A model generated the notes under the pieces. The model saw only the letters and a list, made by a program, of their open reading frames with translations. It had not been told where the DNA came from and searched no databases. Position numbers and translations under genes: made by a program. Positions 26,642 through 50,322 of a DNA stretch of 64,000 nt are shown piece after piece. How positions within the stretch are numbered: position 1 is the first letter of the stretch; every line of letters begins with the position of its first letter. This DNA comes from Thalia democratica (Eukaryota). Location: NCBI GenBank assembly GCA_965202585.1, contig OZ241826.1:77190001-77254000 (forward strand), in the 5' to 3' direction.

Positions 26642-27373
26642 ATGATAACGCTGAAAAAAGATAACAAGAAGCAGTTGGACACAGAAGTCTTCACCAACTT
26701 GCAATGGAGCGATGACAGCAAGCTCTTCCACAAGTACAGGCTGGCAGTCACCACCTACATGGTCTCCATGATACTGAGGGACTTCTACTGCGGCTACTAC
26801 TCTTCCGTCTTCCACTACACGTGGTTCTTCACCAACTGGCAGATCCTGTGGATCACCTCCTACAACCTCCTGTCTCTTTCAACGTACCGGGCCATCGAAG
26901 ACAACAAACCTGTGAGCAGCAGGCACCTGAAGTGGCAGATGTACCTCCAGTCGTTCGGCTTCAACTCCTCCTTCACCGTCATGACGTTTTTCTGGTTGCT
27001 GCTGGCTTCTAGGACGGACAAGCCTCTGTGGTCGCTGCACAACTTGCACGTCCACTGCTTTTCGTTCTTGCTCATGCTGGCAGACGCGATGGTGACCAAG
27101 ACTCCGGTGCTGAAAGAGCATTTCGTCTACACTGTGTTCGGGGGCATGGTGTATACTTTTTACACATTTTTGTTGTACCAGTTCAGCGTTGTCACTGATG
27201 TTTACTTCTTTTTGAACTGGGCGAACCGTTCCACTGTTTTTGTTGGAATTGGTTTCAGCTTGTTTAGTGGCGTTGCTGGACATAGTTTACTGTATTTTCT
27301 GTTTAAACTAAGGTCAGTTTTACACAGAAAATACGTAAAAAAAGAAGCCTTAGCTAAATACGAGTTGGTATAA
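26642..27373 (+). CDS. Rolling-stone-like (FAR-17a/AIG1-like family) multi-pass membrane protein, 243 aa, single coding exon
   Basis: Uninterrupted ORF with strong C/G-ending codon bias and several hydrophobic helices. Motifs WFFTNW, LHVH..F.LML.D, P.LKEHFVY..FGG.VY..Y, VYFFLNW resemble the rost/AIG1 family pattern. Confidence 0.85.
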   Translation: MITLKKDNKKQLDTEVFTNLQWSDDSKLFHKYRLAVTTYMVSMILRDFYCGYYSSVFHYTWFFTNWQILWITSYNLLSLSTYRAIEDNKPVSSRHLKWQMYLQSFGFNSSFTVMTFFWLLLASRTDKPLWSLHNLHVHCFSFLLMLADAMVTKTPVLKEHFVYTVFGGMVYTFYTFLLYQFSVVTDVYFFLNWANRSTVFVGIGFSLFSGVAGHSLLYFLFKLRSVLHRKYVKKEALAKYELV

Positions 27374-30300: not shown

Positions 30301-33075
30301 TTCTAAAATTACAACGCCGGTCAGTCTGAAGACTAGAGTATTGAAAATGTTAACATGTCCGAAAAGATTATTAGTGTTTTTTATAAATGACACAATTTTT
30401 TTCTCAATCTCTTTGAAAGACTTTTTTTCCAAAGATGTTTTGTTTTTAAGTAAAAATCTAAACAACAACTTTTACCTAACATGTTTTACCATTTGTTTTC
30501 AGCAGTTACCTTGAAAACTCGACGTGAACCAGATTTTAAATCTATTGTATACACTTAACATGAAATAGTTTTACTATTCATATCCAATTAACAAATTTAA
30601 ACCTTGTACATCAAGTCTTAACACTGATTTTGAACAAATTTAAATATTTTCATTTTATAAAAAGTATATATGGTAGGTTGCAGTTTATAAATATACATGT
30701 TATTAGGTATATAAAGTTTTATAATTGCTCAAAACTTAATTTTAAGAGTTTCAAGCTAAAATTTTTGTCCCTAGACTTATAAAATACTTTACTGAATATA
30801 AATAGTATTAAATGGACTTTCTTATAAACCTAGTACCTAGAGTACCTTACGTAAGTTATAACCTCATACATATTTAATTTGAAGTATAGTATTTTCTCGC
30901 TTGAGTGAGTACTTAAAACACAAAAAAAAAAGCGTGTTCATGAAGTTATATATAAATATTCTCACTTTAAACTTAACTTTAATATATTAAAAGTAGATAA
31001 TATATCAATAGATGTACTATTTTCTGTGAAGTTGACAATAACAGCAAACAAGTATTTAAAAAGAATGTTCAAAATTTTGCAAATGATATGTTTGTGATTA
31101 CTTTGTTGTCCTACAACTGAGCTAAATTTTGTGTTTTAATGGTGCACAGTATTTAACTACAGTGATTTTTATTAATTAGTTAAAAATATGTTGTGTGTTC
31201 TTTAGTATTTTTGTACCTACTCTTTACATTTTTCAACAACACAACACATAAAATAGTTTTTTAAACATTAATTACAGAACGACTTTTTTTGATCAAAATA
31301 AAAAAAGAGTATTTTAAACACAATATTATTTGCCATAAAAAAAGTGCGTACCAAACTGTAAGTGCAGACTTGAAAATAATGTATTTCTAACATCGGGAGG
31401 TTACTTTTTACTTAAAATCTACATAACCTTTAACAGTAAAAAATCTGGTAGTAGAGTTGTTCTGAAATGGTTAAGTATTCTACCTTAAGAAGAATGTTAG
31501 AGAAAGGTTAAAAGCAACGTATGCCCTATCATTATAACGAATTTTAACATATCAAAACTAGTAGTCATAAGTTAGATACGTAGTTAGTGCCAATTTTAAA
31601 ATTTTGTTATAAAAACTTTTTTGTATTTGCATTCTTGAAGTATTTAAAAATATGTATTTTTTATTGAACGACAAAAAAGCCGTCAAAATAAACTGAAGGT
31701 TTGGTCCTAAGACCTGGTGATTGAAGAACCTTTCGGTTATGGAGTCGCACACCACTGATATCTTTTAACATCTTGTCAAGGACAATAAGTGCTAATCAAC
31801 ACTAAAACAAAAAATATCCAAATTTGAAATAGTATTTACTTATTAATGAACTTGTAATCAGTATTATTTTATTGATGCTCCTGCTTAAATTAAATTGGTT
31901 TGGTTAAAAGTATCAGCAAACTGTTGAACTGCCAATCTCTGATTAGAACTTTTATAATTATGACATGGTAAACATTAAAAAATCTAGTGTAACTAGAAAA
32001 AAACAGAGATGTAAATTTAATATTTTGCGGTTCATATAGTTCTACATCATAAGGTAAAAAGCTATAGAAAGTATAAAGTAGATTAAAGGTCATTTTACAT
32101 TTGAACAATTGAATATTTTTTATATATTTTAATTTTAATACCTGGAGTCTTACTTTTTTCAAAGAAACTACAGTTTTATACATTTAATTCGAAGCTAGCA
32201 AAATTTTAAGCTTTTGAGTAAATACTTTGGAGTTTTTCAAGTATAAAGCAATTTTAATACTTTTTAAGTACTCAATTTTTAACTGTTAATTATTACAACA
32301 TTAATATAAAATAGTGAAAAAGAGTGTGTCTCAAGTCAGCAAATAAAAAAAAGTAATTTTAATGAACAGCATTAAAATTTATATTAAGTTTGAAGTTGTT
32401 TTAAATCTAACTGTTAATTTTTTCCAATATATAATGTTAGTTATTTTAAAATTACAACTACTAAAAATGTTACAAAAATTTTACTTTATATACGCTATTT
32501 ATTAAAAAGTGAAAAAAGTTGGAAGCTTTTTAAAGAAAAAGTTTTATTTTCTTAAAAAAATAAAATAAAACAAGAGTAATCATCATTTTATTTCAGAACT
32601 TTAGCTGAAAGAAAATAAAAAATAATTTTAAAGACTTATGTACTTAATCCATTAAGATACTTCTGATTCAACAAGACATAATGGTTTTTCATTACCTGAA
32701 AATATAAAACAAATGTAAAGTCCTTTTTTTTATGTTCAATCGTTGAACTTCACACTTTTAAATTAACTGTTAATTAATAAAACTTATAAAAAACCGTAGA
32801 ACAACTATTATCTAAACTAAATAAAGACTATGGAATAATAAAATAAGAGTCAGTGATTTAAAAGTACGTAAAATGTCTTTATAAGGAGAAGTTTGTTCAA
32901 TCTTGATGTTTAAATTGAATTTAGTCACTATAATGTATAGAAATGAACTAAAAATTTTCCTAATAAAACTTTAAATAGATATTAAGTATACAGTTTTCGT
33001 AAAAATAAATTAGAAAAAATAAATTTGCTTTTGTTGTGTTCTTTTTTGTTAATTAAACCAAAAAAAAACCTTTTG

Positions 33076-35843
33076 TTAGTTCTCTACTACAGTATCTGCA
33101 TATATCTTATTATAGTCAACATTATTATCAACGTAGTTTTTCTTTGGATCTGCTAAATCAATATAAACTGATATTTTACCATCTTCAGAACTCGTACACA
33201 CTGTTTATTTATGAACATTTTTAGGCTTGAACGTGAATTTCTTTCGAAAATAAACAAGAAATAAGAAGAACAAAGGTTAATTTTTTATTTATAAGTCTTT
33301 TTTTATAAGTTATTTTATAAGCCTAATTTAGAAAATTAATGGAATGTAAAATAAATGCAAATAACTTAAACAAAAAATATTATTTTAGAGAAGTTTTTAT
33401 ATAATTGTATACGAAAAATCTGCTTTAAATCACACTATTTTTTTAAATTATCTATTTCAAATAAAAACTTTTAAGTAGTTGTTATACTAAAATTTATAGA
33501 AATTGGTTAAAAGCAAAAGCTTCGCGTGTAAAAAATTAAAAATCTACAGATACTAAAAAGTAGTTATAAAAAATCAAAAATATGTAATTGTTTACCAAAT
33601 ATAAAAGTTTATGTTTCTTCTAGTTTATTTTATTGTTACTAAAGTAAGTATACTTGAAACTTAAAAGAAATCCGATATAACAAATTGTTTACTCTAATAG
33701 AGATCTTCATTTGTAATTGAAACTTTAATCAAGTAAAAATTAATTATAACTTTTTTCTTCTTGAATTTAATTTGAGAACTTTTAAAAGTGTTACGCTTAA
33801 AGCGAACGTCATGCAATATTTAAAAATAACGAACACTAACTTTGTTTACTTTGATCTTCTGCATCAACATAAACTGCTTTTGTATCATCTTCAGAATTTG
33901 TATCAACTGTTTATTTATTAAATGTATTAGTCTTTAAAGTGTTTGTTTTAGAAAAGTATATGAGTCTTGTGAAGAACAATATTAAAAAAAAAAACGCTTT
34001 TTAAAGGTCTTGTTTAAATCCTTAAGCTAAAAAATTATTTTATAAGTCTAAATTAGAAAATTAATGGAATGTAAAATAAATGCAAATAATTTAAACAAAA
34101 AATATTATTTTAGAGAAGTTTTTATATCATTTTATACGAAAAATCTGCTTCAAATCACACTATTTCTTTAAATTATCTATTTTAAATAAAAACTTTTAAG
34201 TACTTGTTATACTAAAATTTATAGAAATTGGTTAAAAGCAAAAGCTTCGCGTGTAAAAAATTAAAAATCTACAGATACTAAAAAGTAGTTATAAAAAATC
34301 AAAAATATATAATTGTTTACCAAATATAAAAGTTTATGTTTCTTCTAGTTTATATTATTGTTACTAAAGTAAGTATACTTGAAACTTATAAGAAATCCGA
34401 TATAACAAATTGTTTACTCTAATAGAGATCTTCATTTGTAATTGAAACTTTAATCAAGTAAAAATTAATTATAACTTTTTTCTTCTTGAATTTAATTTGA
34501 GAACTTTTAAAGGTGTTACGCTTAAAGCGAACATCATACAATATTTAAAAATAACGAACACTAACTCTGTTTACTTTGATCTTCTGCATCAACATAAACT
34601 GCTTTTGTATCATCTTCAGAATTTGTATAAACTGTTTATTTATTAAATGTATTAGTCTTTAAAGTGTTTGTCTTAGAAAAGTATATGAGTCTTGTGAAGA
34701 ACAATATTAAAAAAAAAACGATTTTTAAAGGTCTTGTTTGAAAATCCTTAAGCTAAAAAACTTAAAAATTAAAATGAAGAAACTAATAATGTACAGGTTT
34801 TTATTTAATTTGAGTATCTACAAATCCTGTATTGGTTCATTAAAAGCATGAGAAAGAAAAATTAGTTTAATAGCTAAAAATTATTTTTTCAATTTTATAG
34901 TTTACTTAATAAACATATCATAAAAAAACTAACTGTGTTTAGTTGGGGGATCTGGCAAAGTTTCATAAAAGTTTGTTGGAGTTTCTGTAAATTAAGATAC
35001 TTTATTTTTTGAAAAAGCATTGACTTTAATTTAAGTTAATTAGTAGATTTCAGTTTATGACAAAAATTAGTACTACATTAGACTTTTTTTTCTGTCAATT
35101 ATAAAAGAAATGTGACCTAGCTGTATCTAGAATTAAGTTTTTAAAGTAAAACATGTTTAACTTTTTTTTACCAGTTAACTTTTTTGTTTAAAACTAAGTA
35201 AAAATATTTACATACCTTCCATTTCTATCCTCTTTTTGCTTTGTTCTGTTACGTTAAACAATTGCATGAAAGTATTATTTATGAGTTTTTGTTGTATATT
35301 TTGTATCTATTAGGGCTATTAGCATATCAAGATAAATTTTAAGAAAAGCTCATAAACTTAAAACAACAAACTTACTCGTCATAAAATCTTCTTTTTTACT
35401 GTCTTCTGTAAAAACAAATATAAATAATGATTTAAAAAACAAGCTTTTAGTTATAAAAAAGCTATTAAAGGTTTTAATTTAAATTTACAAGCTAGTATAC
35501 GATAAAATGTTTTATTTTTTTAAACAGAATGACAAGTTTTTTTTTACTATGAATCTTACTTATACATTAAATACCACTATAGATCAAAACAATTCAAAAC
35601 TTTAAAGTTATTAGAGACAAATGAGTAAAGTATTAATAAAAATTTATTTTGAACTTAAACAAGTTGCTATTTTTCTATACGTTTTTAGTTTAGGTTGTAT
35701 CAAAAAGTATACTTACTTGAACGTATTGTTTTTAGGTCCAGTTTCTTACAAATACAAACGACAAAAATAAAAATTAAGTTAACTGCAGCATAAGCAAACA
35801 ATGCTATTGGTATATAAATCATAGTTTGACTTTGATAATATAC
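33076..35843 (-). CDS. Unannotated type I single-pass receptor: TM exon plus microexon-encoded Tyr-motif cytoplasmic tail (3' part of gene)
   Basis: TM exon 35843-35717 (CAG|...|GTAAGT): VYYQSQTMIYIPIALFAYAAVNLIFIFVVCICKKLDLKTIRS. Phase 1-1 microexons 35405-35376 (DSKKEDFMT), 35245-35216 (QSKKRIEME), 34631-34575 (YTNSEDDTKAVYVDAEDQ), 33906-33850 (DTNSEDDTKAVYVDAEDQ). Terminal exon 33200-33076 (CTSSEDGKISVYIDLADPKKNYVDNNVDYNKIYADTVVEN*). All junctions keep the frame open. Confidence 0.75.
33311..34760. repeat. Recent tandem duplication, about 725-bp unit, 2 near-identical copies (plus a diverged partial copy at about 33130-33310)
   Basis: GAAAATTAATGGAATG begins at 33331 and 34056 (period 725), and the units align nearly base for base. 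33130-33310 aligns with the last third of the unit at lower identity. Confidence 0.95.
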
Positions 35844-35960
35844 CTGATAAAATTCACAAATTAAAATAGATAGTTTTCAACTTACACAAGGTAACTATTT
35901 TAGTACTATATAACTTTAATGAAGTTGTAAAATATTTTTTGTCTTTGTTTGAGTTTTTAC

Positions 35961-36377
35961 CATGTTTTGAGATAATCTACTTTGAAGTTCACTTTGTTTT
36001 CAAAGAGACGTTTAATTTCAGTTCTATACACACAATTTTTCATTTATATGATTAAATAATTATTTATACTTTGGAGTAAACTAATATTTACCAAGAATTT
36101 ATAAACCTTGCACTAAAAAAATCCATACTTTGTAAAATAACAAAATGCTCGCAACATAAAAATATTACTTTGGTTTTGATTTAAGTTTAAAAACTTATTT
36201 CTCTCACTCTCTTTCTTCAACTAATAAATTAAAATAATAAATACGGTCAAAAAGGTATTTGCTCTTTCTATCTTAAAATAAAACGGTTATTTACATCGCA
36301 AATAGTTGACAGAATATAAATACTTTCCACATAAGCACTTTGAACAAAGCACAAAAGAGCGTATTTAACTGGAAGTG
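35961..36377 (-). CDS. Candidate ectodomain exons of the same receptor (divergent FN3-like)
   Basis: Phase-compatible chain: 36377/36368-36295 (..KYALLCFVQSAYVESIYILSTICD|GTAAAT), 36220-36129 (LKKESERNKFLNLNQNQSNIFMLRAFCYFT|GTATGG), 36023- (KTEIKRLFENK, donor uncertain). The L.(P).T.Y.F.LRA-like spacing suggests FN3 strands E-F. Boundaries are tentative. Confidence 0.4.
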
Positions 36378-39337
36378 CTTACTTAACAAACTGCTAAAAA
36401 AGAAATTGAACACAGAATTTATTAGTTGAAATTGCGTACTCATGCTAAAAAGATGGTAGTTATTTTAACTGAAGTGTTAAACAAGAAGTTGTGTAATGTG
36501 CAATGGGTTTACTATTGATTTTATTTATTTTAGCATGAATATAAAAATACTTTAATCTAACCAACAGTTAAGAGTCACAACCAAATGCTTTCAAAATGCA
36601 TCTTAAATACTCAGTGCTTTATAAATGTTATAGTTGGTTTTTTAAATTAGTTTGTGTCTTTTTTTAAAGCAAACTGTTGTGCGTATTGTTACTTGTAAAC
36701 AATTTTTTAAACAATTTGTTATTCAAAAAAATTAAAACCTAGTATATAAAATATCTCATTTAAAAAAATATTTGCTCTGAGCTTAGTTTATATAAAACTT
36801 AAACATTCCTTTATTAATTTAATTTAAAAAAACATTTTTTTTGCTTTCAAAATATTATCTAAATCATACCTATTTGTACTTAATTAAATATTAAAACTAA
36901 AGTAATAGTTTACTACAATATACCGTATAGTTAGATCTAATTTTTAATTAATTGTAGCAAAACGTAACAACAAATTTTCAAAAAAATGAATACTAAATAA
37001 AGTTTTTAATAATAAGCAAACTTTACTGTTGTAAGAGATGACTAATAAAGATTTTGCGTAACTATTTTACTGCTTTATGACTCACCCGAAGCAACTGTTT
37101 GTTATTTTTACTTTGAATAACAACTTTATCCTTACTTAATATACATAAACTTGTGTTACTGCTTTTAATAAAAAATGTAACTAATTTGTTTATTTGTTTT
37201 TTACAACATTTTACTATCAAACTGTGTATTTTTGACACTTTATTGAGATTTTACATATGTTTTTGATTTTTAACACAGGAATCAAAACTAATTTCAAGAT
37301 AAACGTTTTTTTGAATCTTTTTTTATAAATTTCACGGTTTCAAAAACGTATTAAAAAAAAAACATTATTATATCAATGTTAAGCGAAGTTTTTACGAACA
37401 AACTTTTAAACAGCTCACAGCATAAATCAGATTTTTAGATAAATAAAATGAGCCAGAAAAATGAAAGACATGTATAGGAACATTAAAATTAGGCGTATCG
37501 TTAAAGAAACAGTTTAATAGAAAAGCAAACAACTAGTTATTATTTTTCTCTCCTACTCTAAAACTAAAATAACTTACAGTCAAATACTTATGAAACAGGA
37601 AAGTGATACATTTTTTATTTCATTTCAAATCTAAACATCTTGGAAATTGATAAAGAATAAGAAAATAAAAATTGAAGCTGATCATCTTAAATGAGGTACA
37701 TATCGCTGCTGAAGCTAACTTAAATAAGATTTTTATTAAAAACAAAACAGACGCTTTCTTTTAGATTATAAATTCAAAGAAATCTAGTGAAAAGCTGAAA
37801 ACTAGTGTTTTATAGGTTAACTATTTTGAAAATTTATCATCAGTTGTTTTGTTCAACATTTATTTAAAAAATCATGTACACAAAAAAAAAAATTTAACTT
37901 TTTAACAATACAATTTAATTTTTTTTAATATTTTTCTTGTAAATAACCTTACACTACTTCGCAGTAAAGCATCATTTCAACTACACACAGCTTTTGAATA
38001 GAGTTAATTTATGATTTTAATACAGAAATAACTAAACATTTACTAACTTTAAATTGTACAGTTTAAACTTTTTTTAATCTATATATTATTTTATTTTACA
38101 ATTTTAAAAGGAAACCAAAAATTAACTAAAAAAACTTAAAAGTAGAACTAAACTTTCTGTAGTTTTTTACAACTTCGTTAACCGTTCACACTTAATAAGT
38201 TTCAGCTAAGACAATATTTGTATTCTTATGTACGTATTTGTAAATAAAACTCATTCTTCCTTATTAGGTTTGATCAAATTTGTTTTTTTCTAATTTTTAC
38301 TGCCTAAAAACTAAGAAAACCTTTAGATTGATGTTACTAAATTATCTTTTAGAAAGGTAAAAAAACAAAAAAAAAACAAAGTATATATATAAATAATAGT
38401 ATGAGCAAATATAAACTTGTTTTCAATTTATTTAAATAAAGGCTAGCAGACTTTTATAAATAAGGGCTAATTGATCGTACTTTATAAAAATGTCTTCAAC
38501 AGGCAACAGTTATTTATTAAAATTTTATATATTTATAAAACGGCACTAAATTTACGCAAAAAATATGATAAAATATGCAATAATAAAGCATTAGTTAATA
38601 ATAACCAAGTTAAGAGCTTAATTCAAATTATTTACGACAAAATACGTTTATTTTTTATTTTTATAGCATATTTTTACCTGAAATCTTCATCTCATCAGCA
38701 TATTTCAAACTTGACTATTTTAATTAAAAAAAATGACGCTCCTTGCGTTTTCGAACACCTAATCGTAGAATATAGCTTTCAGGTCCGCTGTTTGCCGACC
38801 ACTGAGATAAAACAACTGAAGGTCGTCAGTCAAAATAATAATATTACGTCAATATATTGGTTCGATTTAAACATAACAATTATTTTTAGTTTTAAAGTTA
38901 TTTCAAATGTTTATCTTTTATAAAGTAATGATACATTAAGTTTCTAATCTAATTTGAAAATTAAATACTCGTACAATAGTATACTTTACTGTCCAGTTAC
39001 TTTTATTCTAGCTTGACTCTTTTATTGTTCTGTAAAGTTTTGTTTACTTTTAATGAGTAGTGTTTTGTATTTTAAATAAAAGTTTTGATAACGAAGACGT
39101 AAACTTAAGTTAAATAAACAAGTTTGAAGACTAGAAAAGAGAAACTCTAAGCTGCCGAGTCACAAGCAGCTGTTAGTTCACGTTCTAAAAAGTATGGACG
39201 ACTTTTTGAAGTCTTTGGACGATTCTTTGGAGCGCAATAAGGATAATTGGTTAAATTTACGAGGATTGGAGAATGTTGATGAGAAAACGTGCGACTTTTC
39301 CAATGGAAACATCGAAGTATCCTGACATGGCATAAAA

Positions 39338-49115: not shown

Positions 49116-50322
49116 TTAGAAAAACTCTAAAGGGTTTTTGTAATTGAACAACCTGGCAAAGTAGTTTTGGGTGGCGATGTGCTCAAGCTGACTTTGTTGG
49201 TACTGCGTCATGTTGTAAGCTGGTTGGAGAATCTGATTCGTTTGCAAGCTGCTGATTGCTGGATATGAAGGTTGTTGTGACGTCATAGCGTGAGTTTGAA
49301 GGTGGGAGAGAAGTTGGTCGGAAGTGGAAAACTTCTTGCCGCAAGTGACGTTATTGACCATCCAGTTGCAGACGTGCTGAGAACTTTTCAGCTGATCTTC
49401 GATTGTCTTCATGTAGTAATGCATTGGATTCATCATCTGCATTTGAAATTGTGCTTGGTGATTAAAGTTATTTTGATAATGATTATGATAAAAGAGGTTG
49501 CTGTGTAAAAGCTGGTTGTTTTGGTGCAACATGGAATAAAGAGAAGCATTTCCGTAATTAGAATTGCCAGAAAAACCAGTAAACTCTGTGTTTTTCACAG
49601 TATCTTTCCTCACAGGAGTAAGCCTCAGTTTTTTTGATGAGCTAACATTTTCATTTGATGAGTTTTGACTGTTAGGGCGCTTTGAAACTTTACTGGCCGG
49701 TCTGTCAATGCTAACATTTTCGTCAGTCGGTTTATTAAATGATTTCGCCGTTTTTGTTGGTGATACGTGTTCAGTTTTAGGTGTCAGGGTACTTTTATTA
49801 GCTTCTTCTTTTCTTTGCTCTTTTTGCTGCCGACTGAATTTTTCTTCTTGTTGTTGTGTTGCAGGTGATGGGTAAGTCGCAGTGGCAGCCGGTCTGTTGG
49901 TTGAACTGAGGTTGCTTTCAATTGCTGAACATGATTGGACGAGCAGCGCCAGTGGAGACTGCTTTAAATTGATCTGCCAGAACAATAATGTATTAAAAAC
50001 AATGACTTACACAAATATAGAAAAAACGATAGATACGTTTTTAATACTTACTTAATAAATGTTACTATTTTTAAAACAATTCTTTTTGTCATTAAAACTA
50101 AAAAAAATGTTTAAAATTCTTAATAATATAAAAAAAGATATATGCTTTACTTTTTTCGGAAAAAAAAAGCTTTGCTAAAACAAAAATACAAAAACTTGCT
50201 TTAGTTTAAACACAAACTTTTAGCTTTAAAAAAAATTATATAAAACTTTTGTTTACCTGCGGTGTGTCTTTCTCGGGTTGCAAGTATTTGTTAAGAAAAA
50301 TATTTTCCTGCTTAATTGACAT
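49116..50322 (-). CDS. ZNF503/703-like: NET/NocA-family (ZNF503/ZNF703, Nlz, Elbow/Noc-like) zinc-finger protein, 2 exons, 307 aa
   Basis: Exon 1 50322-50257 MSIKQENIFLNKYLQPEKDTPQ|GTAAAC; exon 2 49973-49116 begins INLKQSPLALLVQSCSAIE (Sp motif). Single atypical C2H2 finger HVCNWMVNNVTCGKKFSTSDQLLSHLQTH. The intron sits between YLQP and SPLALL, as recalled for NET genes. Confidence 0.93.

Follow-up and report, generated by a model that had tools for sequence, protein, structure and literature searches.

The question raised by this stretch of DNA is how a membrane protein comes to carry additional tyrosine motifs in its tail. The window analyzed here, 64,000 nucleotides (nt) of the Thalia democratica genome (assembly GCA_965202585.1, contig OZ241826.1, positions 77,190,001 to 77,254,000), holds on its minus strand a seven-exon gene, termed gene A below, in which a 725-bp piece carrying a 57-nt exon occurs twice in tandem. 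The tandem duplication of this symmetric exon is real and recent. We consider it somewhat better than even that the duplicated exon adds a tyrosine module to the tail of a predicted adaptor-like protein. Positions below are those of the window unless a chromosome is named.

Self-comparison of positions 32000-36500 by BLAST and repeat finding yields one strong direct repeat, in which 33307-34037 aligns with 34032-34764 at a period of 725 nt. The copies are 96.7% identical over 734 columns, with 20 substitutions, three indels of 1-2 nt and an E-value of 0. Unit 1 (33307-34031, 725 nt, no strand assigned) consists of 543 nt of the intron between exon d1 and the terminal exon, exon d1 itself and 125 nt of the intron upstream of d1. 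Unit 2 (34032-34757, 726 nt, likewise unstranded and 96.7% identical to unit 1) follows directly, with the junction at 34031/34032. Tandem Repeats Finder reports nothing for this repeat because its longest period is 500, and an Rfam search of 32500-36600 gives no match. The G+C content is ~24% throughout the window. Within the whole 801.8-Mb assembly the unit matches only itself, save for a ~90-nt intronic piece, and it therefore represents a local duplication rather than a mobile element; a transposon origin was rejected on these grounds. The ~90-nt piece (33661-33751 and its equivalent in unit 2) has several copies of 75-84% identity on C4 (~54.19-54.29 Mb) and C28, and resembles a small dispersed repeat or repeat fragment.

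The arrangement is also found outside the reference assembly. The runs matched to the locus are of DNA type only and come from two coded organisms and marine metagenomes, and four of them (X1 to X4) were aligned at a likeness of at least 97%. X1 and X2 derive from the same sample, X3 from a third sample in another study, and X4 is a marine metagenome from a different study. Record 11 of X2 (33964-34082) bridges the junction without a mismatch, and record 26 of X4 (33930-34170) bridges it with one mismatch and one homopolymer gap. Contigs of X3 carry unit-1 letters at 33717-33872 and unit-2 letters at 34442-34597. Because the junction is bridged and both unit types occur in independent samples, the tandem arrangement exists in the reads, and the duplication is not an assembly artifact.

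The number of units per genome can be narrowed by depth. The sequenced sample is heterozygous: immediately upstream of the first coding exon lies a strongly heterozygous block, 36065-36173, for which X1 and X2 give two alleles that differ at eight linked sites. The allele contigs of this block put haplotype depth at ~48 and homozygous sequence at ~96. In the middle segment of the unit, depth is 119 for the unit-1 type and ~38 for the unit-2 type; in the right segment it is 55-65 and 119, respectively. The reference-type junction has a depth of 49, i.e., about one haplotype. Summed unit depth amounts to 3.3-3.8 haplotype equivalents, which fits three or four units per diploid genome (2+2, or 2+1 with copy number differing between haplotypes, as the preliminary description suggested it may) and rules out that both haplotypes have only one. 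Substitutions between the units are uneven, at 5.8%, 1.0% and 2.9% in three segments (chi-square p = 0.009), and it is the middle segment of low divergence (33479-33786) that takes a mosaic form in X2, where a 515-nt contig (34204-34718) has unit-1 letters at three sites (34309, 34354 and 34389) and then switches to unit-2 letters at six sites. Together, the uneven divergence and the mosaic contig suggest that the units have exchanged sequence or that there is a second haplotype form. Separately, the contigs of X1, X2 and X3 all stop at the very same base, 33304, which precedes the left edge of unit 1 by two bases; this shared stop at 33304/33305 indicates a branch at the duplication boundary in three read sets, for which a variant, a homopolymer or another haplotype form are candidates.

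Gene A runs on the minus strand from an ATG at 35822 to a stop at 33076, and its seven exons join 151 codons in one continuous frame across AG/GT boundaries. The chance of 151 open codons at the local base composition is ~1e-6. The start exon (35717-35843, 127 nt, ending in phase 1) reads MIYIP-IALFAYAAVNLIFIFVVCI-CKKLDLKTIRS from the ATG, contains the membrane helix, and is listed with the translation MIYIPIALFAYAAVNLIFIFVVCICKKLDLKTIRS. Three short exons follow on the same strand, each of phase 1-1. Exon e2 (35376-35405, 30 nt) encodes (K)DSKKEDFMT and is uncertain because its counterparts in two paralogs, termed B and C, carry stop codons. Exon e3 (35216-35245, 30 nt; (K)QSKKRIEME) is conserved in both paralogs, and exon e4 (34934-34984, 51 nt) encodes (E)TPTNFYETLPDPPTKH with a YETL motif conserved in all three genes. 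After the duplicated exons d2 and d1, the terminal coding exon (33076-33200, minus strand, 125 nt including the stop) encodes CTSSEDGKISVYIDLADPKKNYVDNNVDYNKIYADTVVEN, which ends in SVYIDLADPKKNYVDNNVDYNKIYADTVVEN immediately before the stop. Since all tail exons (e2, e3, e4, d2 and d1) are of phase 1-1, any combination of them keeps the frame. Further upstream, a 47-nt block on the minus strand (36345-36391) is 72% identical to a block equally far upstream of B's first coding exon and is a tentative candidate for a non-coding first exon or promoter element. The possibility of an upstream signal-peptide exon (ATG at ~36330) was rejected, its donor phase misfitting the helix exon and B having a stop upstream of its start codon.

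Exons d1 (33850-33906) and d2 (34575-34631), both on the minus strand, 57 nt long and of phase 1-1, encode (I)DTNSEDDTKAVYVDAEDQ and (I)YTNSEDDTKAVYVDAEDQ. They share an identical acceptor (taaataaacag, with the terminal cag) and donor (AAA/gtaaac, the slash marking the exon boundary), and the nearest intronic difference between them lies at donor position +8. The exons are identical at 56 of 57 positions; the sole difference, C at 33904 against A at 34629, turns GAT (D) in d1 into TAT (Y) in d2. In being homologous, of equal length and equal phase 1-1, and contained within the 725-nt repeated units, d1 and d2 have the features that define a tandem exon duplication. The preliminary description, which proposed a 725-bp tandem duplication with one intact symmetric 57-nt exon per unit and a D/Y difference between them, is thus upheld by the self-comparison as well as by the frames, splice sites and one-base comparison of the exons. 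GAT at the variable codon also occurs in B's d exon and in B's terminal exon, and D is therefore ancestral and the TAT of d2 derived. The derived change, G>T on the coding strand at 34629, places the new tyrosine in a Y-T-N context and yields I-Y-T-N, a Y-x-N string. Y-x-N strings bind Grb2-family SH2 domains in LAT. Both the GAT and the TAT letters are present in aligned contigs of samples S1 and S2. A D/Y polymorphism was considered from an X4 contig (34574-34717, with C at 34629) and rejected as uninformative, the contig being one mismatch away from either unit.

The exon has an older history within the gene. A region on the minus strand at 33138-33235 is ~79% identical to both units over 98-100 nt, and this older homology takes in the acceptor of the terminal coding exon (33200-33076) and 63 nt at that exon's start. 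The terminal exon continues where d has its donor, reading GATC[CA]AAAGAAAAA against GATCAAA/GTAAAC. The third, older copy named in the preliminary description is accordingly real; its status as a derived product, which had "become" the terminal exon, is not sustained, the terminal exon being common to A, B, C and a metagenomic relative discussed below. It is more likely, judging from this distribution, that the terminal exon is the source of the internal d exon rather than its product. The simplest reading would be that the terminal exon was long ago duplicated in part and that the copy, on acquiring a donor, came to serve as an internal exon. The six d and terminal copies are 58-72% identical in every pairing, a range from which no order of the older duplication follows.

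The two paralogs supply comparison states for this history. The genome was searched exon by exon, and a profile of the three terminal exons was then run against it; two paralogs emerged on the same chromosome, 44 and 81 kb from gene A, and the terminal-exon profile found no further ones. Paralog B (C1:77177721-77179350, plus strand) lies 11 kb before the window start and contains the helix exon (MIYIPVSL...), e3, e4 (TPTNFYETLEEYANIN), one d-like exon (DTNSEYDKKAVYLE...) and the terminal exon. Paralog C (C1:77142585-77140797, minus strand) lies 47 kb before the window start and contains the helix exon, e3, e4 (TSKNIYETLPSYPTKH) and the terminal exon, with no internal d exon. The number of internal d exons is thus 0 in C, 1 in B and 2 in A, so exon number grew stepwise, and the proposal that repeated exon amplification changes the number of tyrosine motifs finds support in this series. 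Seen in gene A alone, the 725-bp duplication is the most recent step. With the shared exons added together, the ratio of nonsynonymous to synonymous divergence (dN/dS) is 0.34 for A-B, 0.33 for A-C and 0.41 for B-C, with dS of ~0.9-1.1; values of 0.33-0.41 represent moderate purifying selection on the family and support coding. Invariant in all three genes are the mid-helix asparagine (Asn15), the K/R following the helix, the tyrosine of YETL, the tyrosine in K-x-Y-[VA]-D and the end I-Y-A-D-[TI]-V-V.

The anatomy of the encoded protein fits the term adaptor-like. The protein starts five residues ahead of its membrane helix, the MIYIP start is conserved in A and B, and an in-frame TAA stands upstream of B's ATG. 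The short start and this stop together leave no room for an ectodomain, so the "receptor tail" of the preliminary description is better called the tail of a membrane protein: the receptor falls away and the tail remains. Mean hydropathy of the helix is 2.4-2.8 over 19 residues in A, B and C, and the ten residues that follow hold four K/R against one D/E in all three genes, so that by the positive-inside rule the C-terminal tail should be cytoplasmic. In gene A the tail is acidic, with 28 D/E, 12 K/R and 8 tyrosines among 110 counted residues, and three tail tyrosine positions are conserved in A, B and C. SH2 domains have 29 exon-level matches in the genome, and readers of phosphotyrosine therefore exist. 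Taken together, a short outer part, a single helix and a tail with eight tyrosines look like a predicted transmembrane adaptor, with an adaptor function being the putative one.

Our proposed explanation runs as follows. Gene A would encode a single-pass membrane protein with about five residues ahead of a hydrophobic helix that bears the conserved asparagine, and a Lys/Arg-rich stop-transfer segment that would keep the C-terminus inside. The acidic tail would be assembled from phase 1-1 micro-exons carrying tyrosine motifs. A 725-bp piece, comprising the 57-nt exon and parts of both flanking introns, was duplicated recently in tandem, the breakpoints sharing little or no homology. If both d exons are spliced in, the tail would gain a 19-residue module (S-E-D-D-T-K-A-V-Y-V-D-A-E-D-Q). 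After the duplication, the first full codon of one copy changed from Asp to Tyr, raising the number of tail tyrosines from six to eight and creating a new Y-x-N site. The tail tyrosines may be phosphorylated and serve as docking sites for SH2 proteins, as in LAT-type adaptors. We infer the topology, the use of both d exons in messenger RNA, and phosphorylation and docking at the tyrosines.

Several observations weigh against this explanation. Firstly, all aligned contigs, which stem from DNA runs, keep their introns. Secondly, the young copies give no selection signal, since differences between d1 and d2 number 1 in 57 exonic nt and 19 in 668 intronic nt (Fisher p = 1), and the d donor, AAA/GTAAAC, is weaker than the other donors of the gene. 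Thirdly, the relatives show lesions. B's d exon lacks a GT where the donor is expected, or close by, and reads into TAG, B's e3 is preceded by GG rather than AG, and the e2 counterparts of both B and C contain stops, so parts of the family may be decaying. B's donor-less d exon looks like either the intermediate expected from an old partial duplication or a decayed copy. Fourthly, the motif of the d exon, A-V-Y-V-D-A, fits no canonical immunoreceptor tyrosine-based inhibitory (ITIM), activation (ITAM) or switch (ITSM) motif. Finally, homolog searches outside the genome, made exon by exon with correspondingly limited sensitivity, give no Pfam match for the helix exon or the terminal exon, no usable neighbor in the language-model Atlas and no named homolog in an exon-level profile search of 1.84 billion proteins.

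That profile search returned only one relative, an unnamed open reading frame (ORF) of 73 amino acids from an ENA metagenome, with 46.5 bits, E = 2.9e-7 and 59% identity to A's terminal exon. The relative is represented by P0001 and P0002 (ENA metagenome ORFs on contigs of 639 and 781 nt), which differ by one residue (N/D). Both read ...KIYVDTVVEN, followed by W and a further 22 residues; the W may be a TGA stop that was called as Trp. A protein scan of JGI metagenome contigs revealed no relative. A DNA pattern scan of the same resource gave 18 matches that were rejected as chance, the only suggestive one, L054, belonging to a longer unrelated ORF.

Two alternatives have to be taken most seriously, each of them unlikely in our view. 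In the first, the duplication is real and neutral: one or both d exons go unrecognized by splicing, or the whole gene is unexpressed or decaying. The intron-retaining DNA contigs, the lack of excess exon conservation in the young copies, the weak GTAAAC type of donor and the lesions of B's d exon and of other paralog exons all agree with such a history. It sits poorly with the condition of gene A itself, whose seven exons are free of lesions and whose frame and splice sites are intact in both d copies, and with the family-wide dN/dS. Nor would neutrality lead one to expect conservation of the e4 and terminal-exon tyrosines across three paralogs and, in part, in the metagenomic relative.

The second alternative, which we hold to be as probable as the first, accepts the protein and reassigns its tyrosines. 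They would be Y-x-x-hydrophobic sorting signals, or simply part of an acidic disordered tail, and the duplication would alter trafficking or nothing specific. YETL and YIDL do fit the Y-x-x-hydrophobic sorting consensus, and the duplicated YVDA fits no named SH2 consensus; no kinase or partner is known. YVDA and YADT, however, misfit the sorting consensus too, and eight tyrosines among acidic residues, together with the conserved terminal I-Y-A-D-x-V-V, resemble multi-site adaptor tails more closely than they do a single sorting signal.

A further alternative is quite doubtful. Tandemly duplicated exons are often alternatively spliced, and d1 and d2 might be used as mutually exclusive or cassette exons, giving isoforms with D or Y and with zero to two modules. 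The uniform 1-1 phase of the tail exons, which leaves every combination in frame, would permit this, and the sole difference between the copies turns an amino acid into a potential phosphorylation site. Nothing in the gene enforces exclusivity, however: joint inclusion keeps the frame, and with 668 nt of intron separating the copies there is room for both to be spliced. Finally, stitching of two haplotypes or of a collapsed or expanded repeat over a single-unit genome is very improbable, for the heterozygous alleles of X1 and X2, the X2 mosaic contig and the one-haplotype junction depth are outweighed by the junction in X2 and in the independent metagenome X4, by both unit types in X3 and by a summed depth well off the two haplotype equivalents expected of a single unit.

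If the extra exon is indeed used, as the tyrosine-module explanation proposes, the locus would offer a cleanly dated, stepwise gain of docking sites, with ancestral states next door and a derived Asp-to-Tyr change. An unannotated class of small, adaptor-like membrane proteins would also be indicated for tunicates, which are more closely related to vertebrates than any other group and in which tyrosine-based immune signaling is poorly known. A bolder extension is conceivable and, to our mind, a long shot: the family may comprise ectodomain-less, LAT-like adaptors restricted to pelagic tunicates, whose helix asparagine pairs with a receptor and whose docking modules are growing now (0, 1, 2), the newest step still exchanging sequence or varying between haplotypes and having gained a new Y-x-N. 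Were this true, the locus would be a live example of evolving signaling valency, possibly tied to the large family of tyrosine-tailed lectin-fold receptors in the same genome.

Two other ORFs lie in the window. At 26642-27373 (plus strand), an intron-free ORF of 243 codons has several hydrophobic stretches and no Pfam match, and overlapping ORFs in other frames there suggest a G+C-richer island. At 49116-49985 (minus strand), a Q/N/S-rich ORF of 289 codons carries a single C2H2 zinc finger (a weak Pfam match) and is probably an exon of a transcription-factor gene.

Known systems place gene A most readily beside the transmembrane adaptor proteins (TRAPs), which are defined by a short outer part, one helix and several tyrosine sites (PMC2803307). 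Like LAT, NTAL/LAB, LIME, PAG, LAX, SIT and TRIM, gene A is predicted to have this architecture, with a pair of cysteines where the helix ends on the inner side (C-I-C-K-K). A juxtamembrane CXXC palmitoylation motif is defined for the raft-associated members LAT, LIME, NTAL and PAG (PMC2803307), whereas the cysteines of gene A form CxC (C-I-C) and are not conserved, C having one and B none. The Grb2 sites of LAT are listed in the same paper; unlike these YxN sites, and with the derived Y-T-N as the one exception, the motifs of A are Y-[VIA]-D and YETL. The tail of gene A is also much shorter (~115 residues), and a conserved asparagine in the helix sets its family apart. No exon has sequence similarity to these proteins, so the likeness to the LAT type is architectural only, and a significant profile match that would place gene A in LAT or another named adaptor family by sequence is absent from the searches described above.

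A second comparison is with the signaling subunits DAP12, DAP10, FcR gamma and CD3 zeta. CD3 zeta carries repeated motif modules, and all four resemble gene A in being small single-pass proteins whose helix bears a polar residue and whose tail bears tyrosine motifs. Unlike them, gene A has no signal peptide, no ectodomain cysteine and Asn in place of the helix Asp. It also lacks a canonical ITAM (YxxL/I-x6-8-YxxL/I), the motif of the subunit class treated in PMC4536121. The closest string in A, YIDL-ADPKKN-YVDN, ends its second half in N and is not conserved in B or C. Strings that fit the ITIM pattern [S/I/V/L]-x-Y-x-x-[I/V/L] are confined to A's terminal exon; these are S-V-Y-I-D-L and V-D-Y-N-K-I, and neither is conserved in B or C.

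A likeness of another kind occurs within the genome. An intron-free ORF at C1:35697723-35698604 has a weak Pfam Lectin_C match and a lectin-like ectodomain, and the repeats of its tail (S/F-P-T-Y-E-T/N-I/V-x-E-P) resemble the T-P-T-N-F-Y-E-T-L-P-D-P of e4. The lectin-fold ORF differs from gene A in being intron-free and having an ectodomain, and the resemblance, which is limited to a short motif, may be convergent. Lectin-fold receptor and adaptor-like gene could, on this resemblance, share a docking motif.

The mechanism itself is ordinary, being tandem exon duplication; what is new is the orphan gene family, whose function is a predicted one. As in tandem exon duplication generally, gene A has adjacent homologous exons that agree in length and phase and belong to a duplicated genomic unit, with an older and a younger round, and it differs from that general case in nothing essential. 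It is a very young case, at 2.7% divergence, and the states that preceded the duplication stand in two neighboring paralogs.

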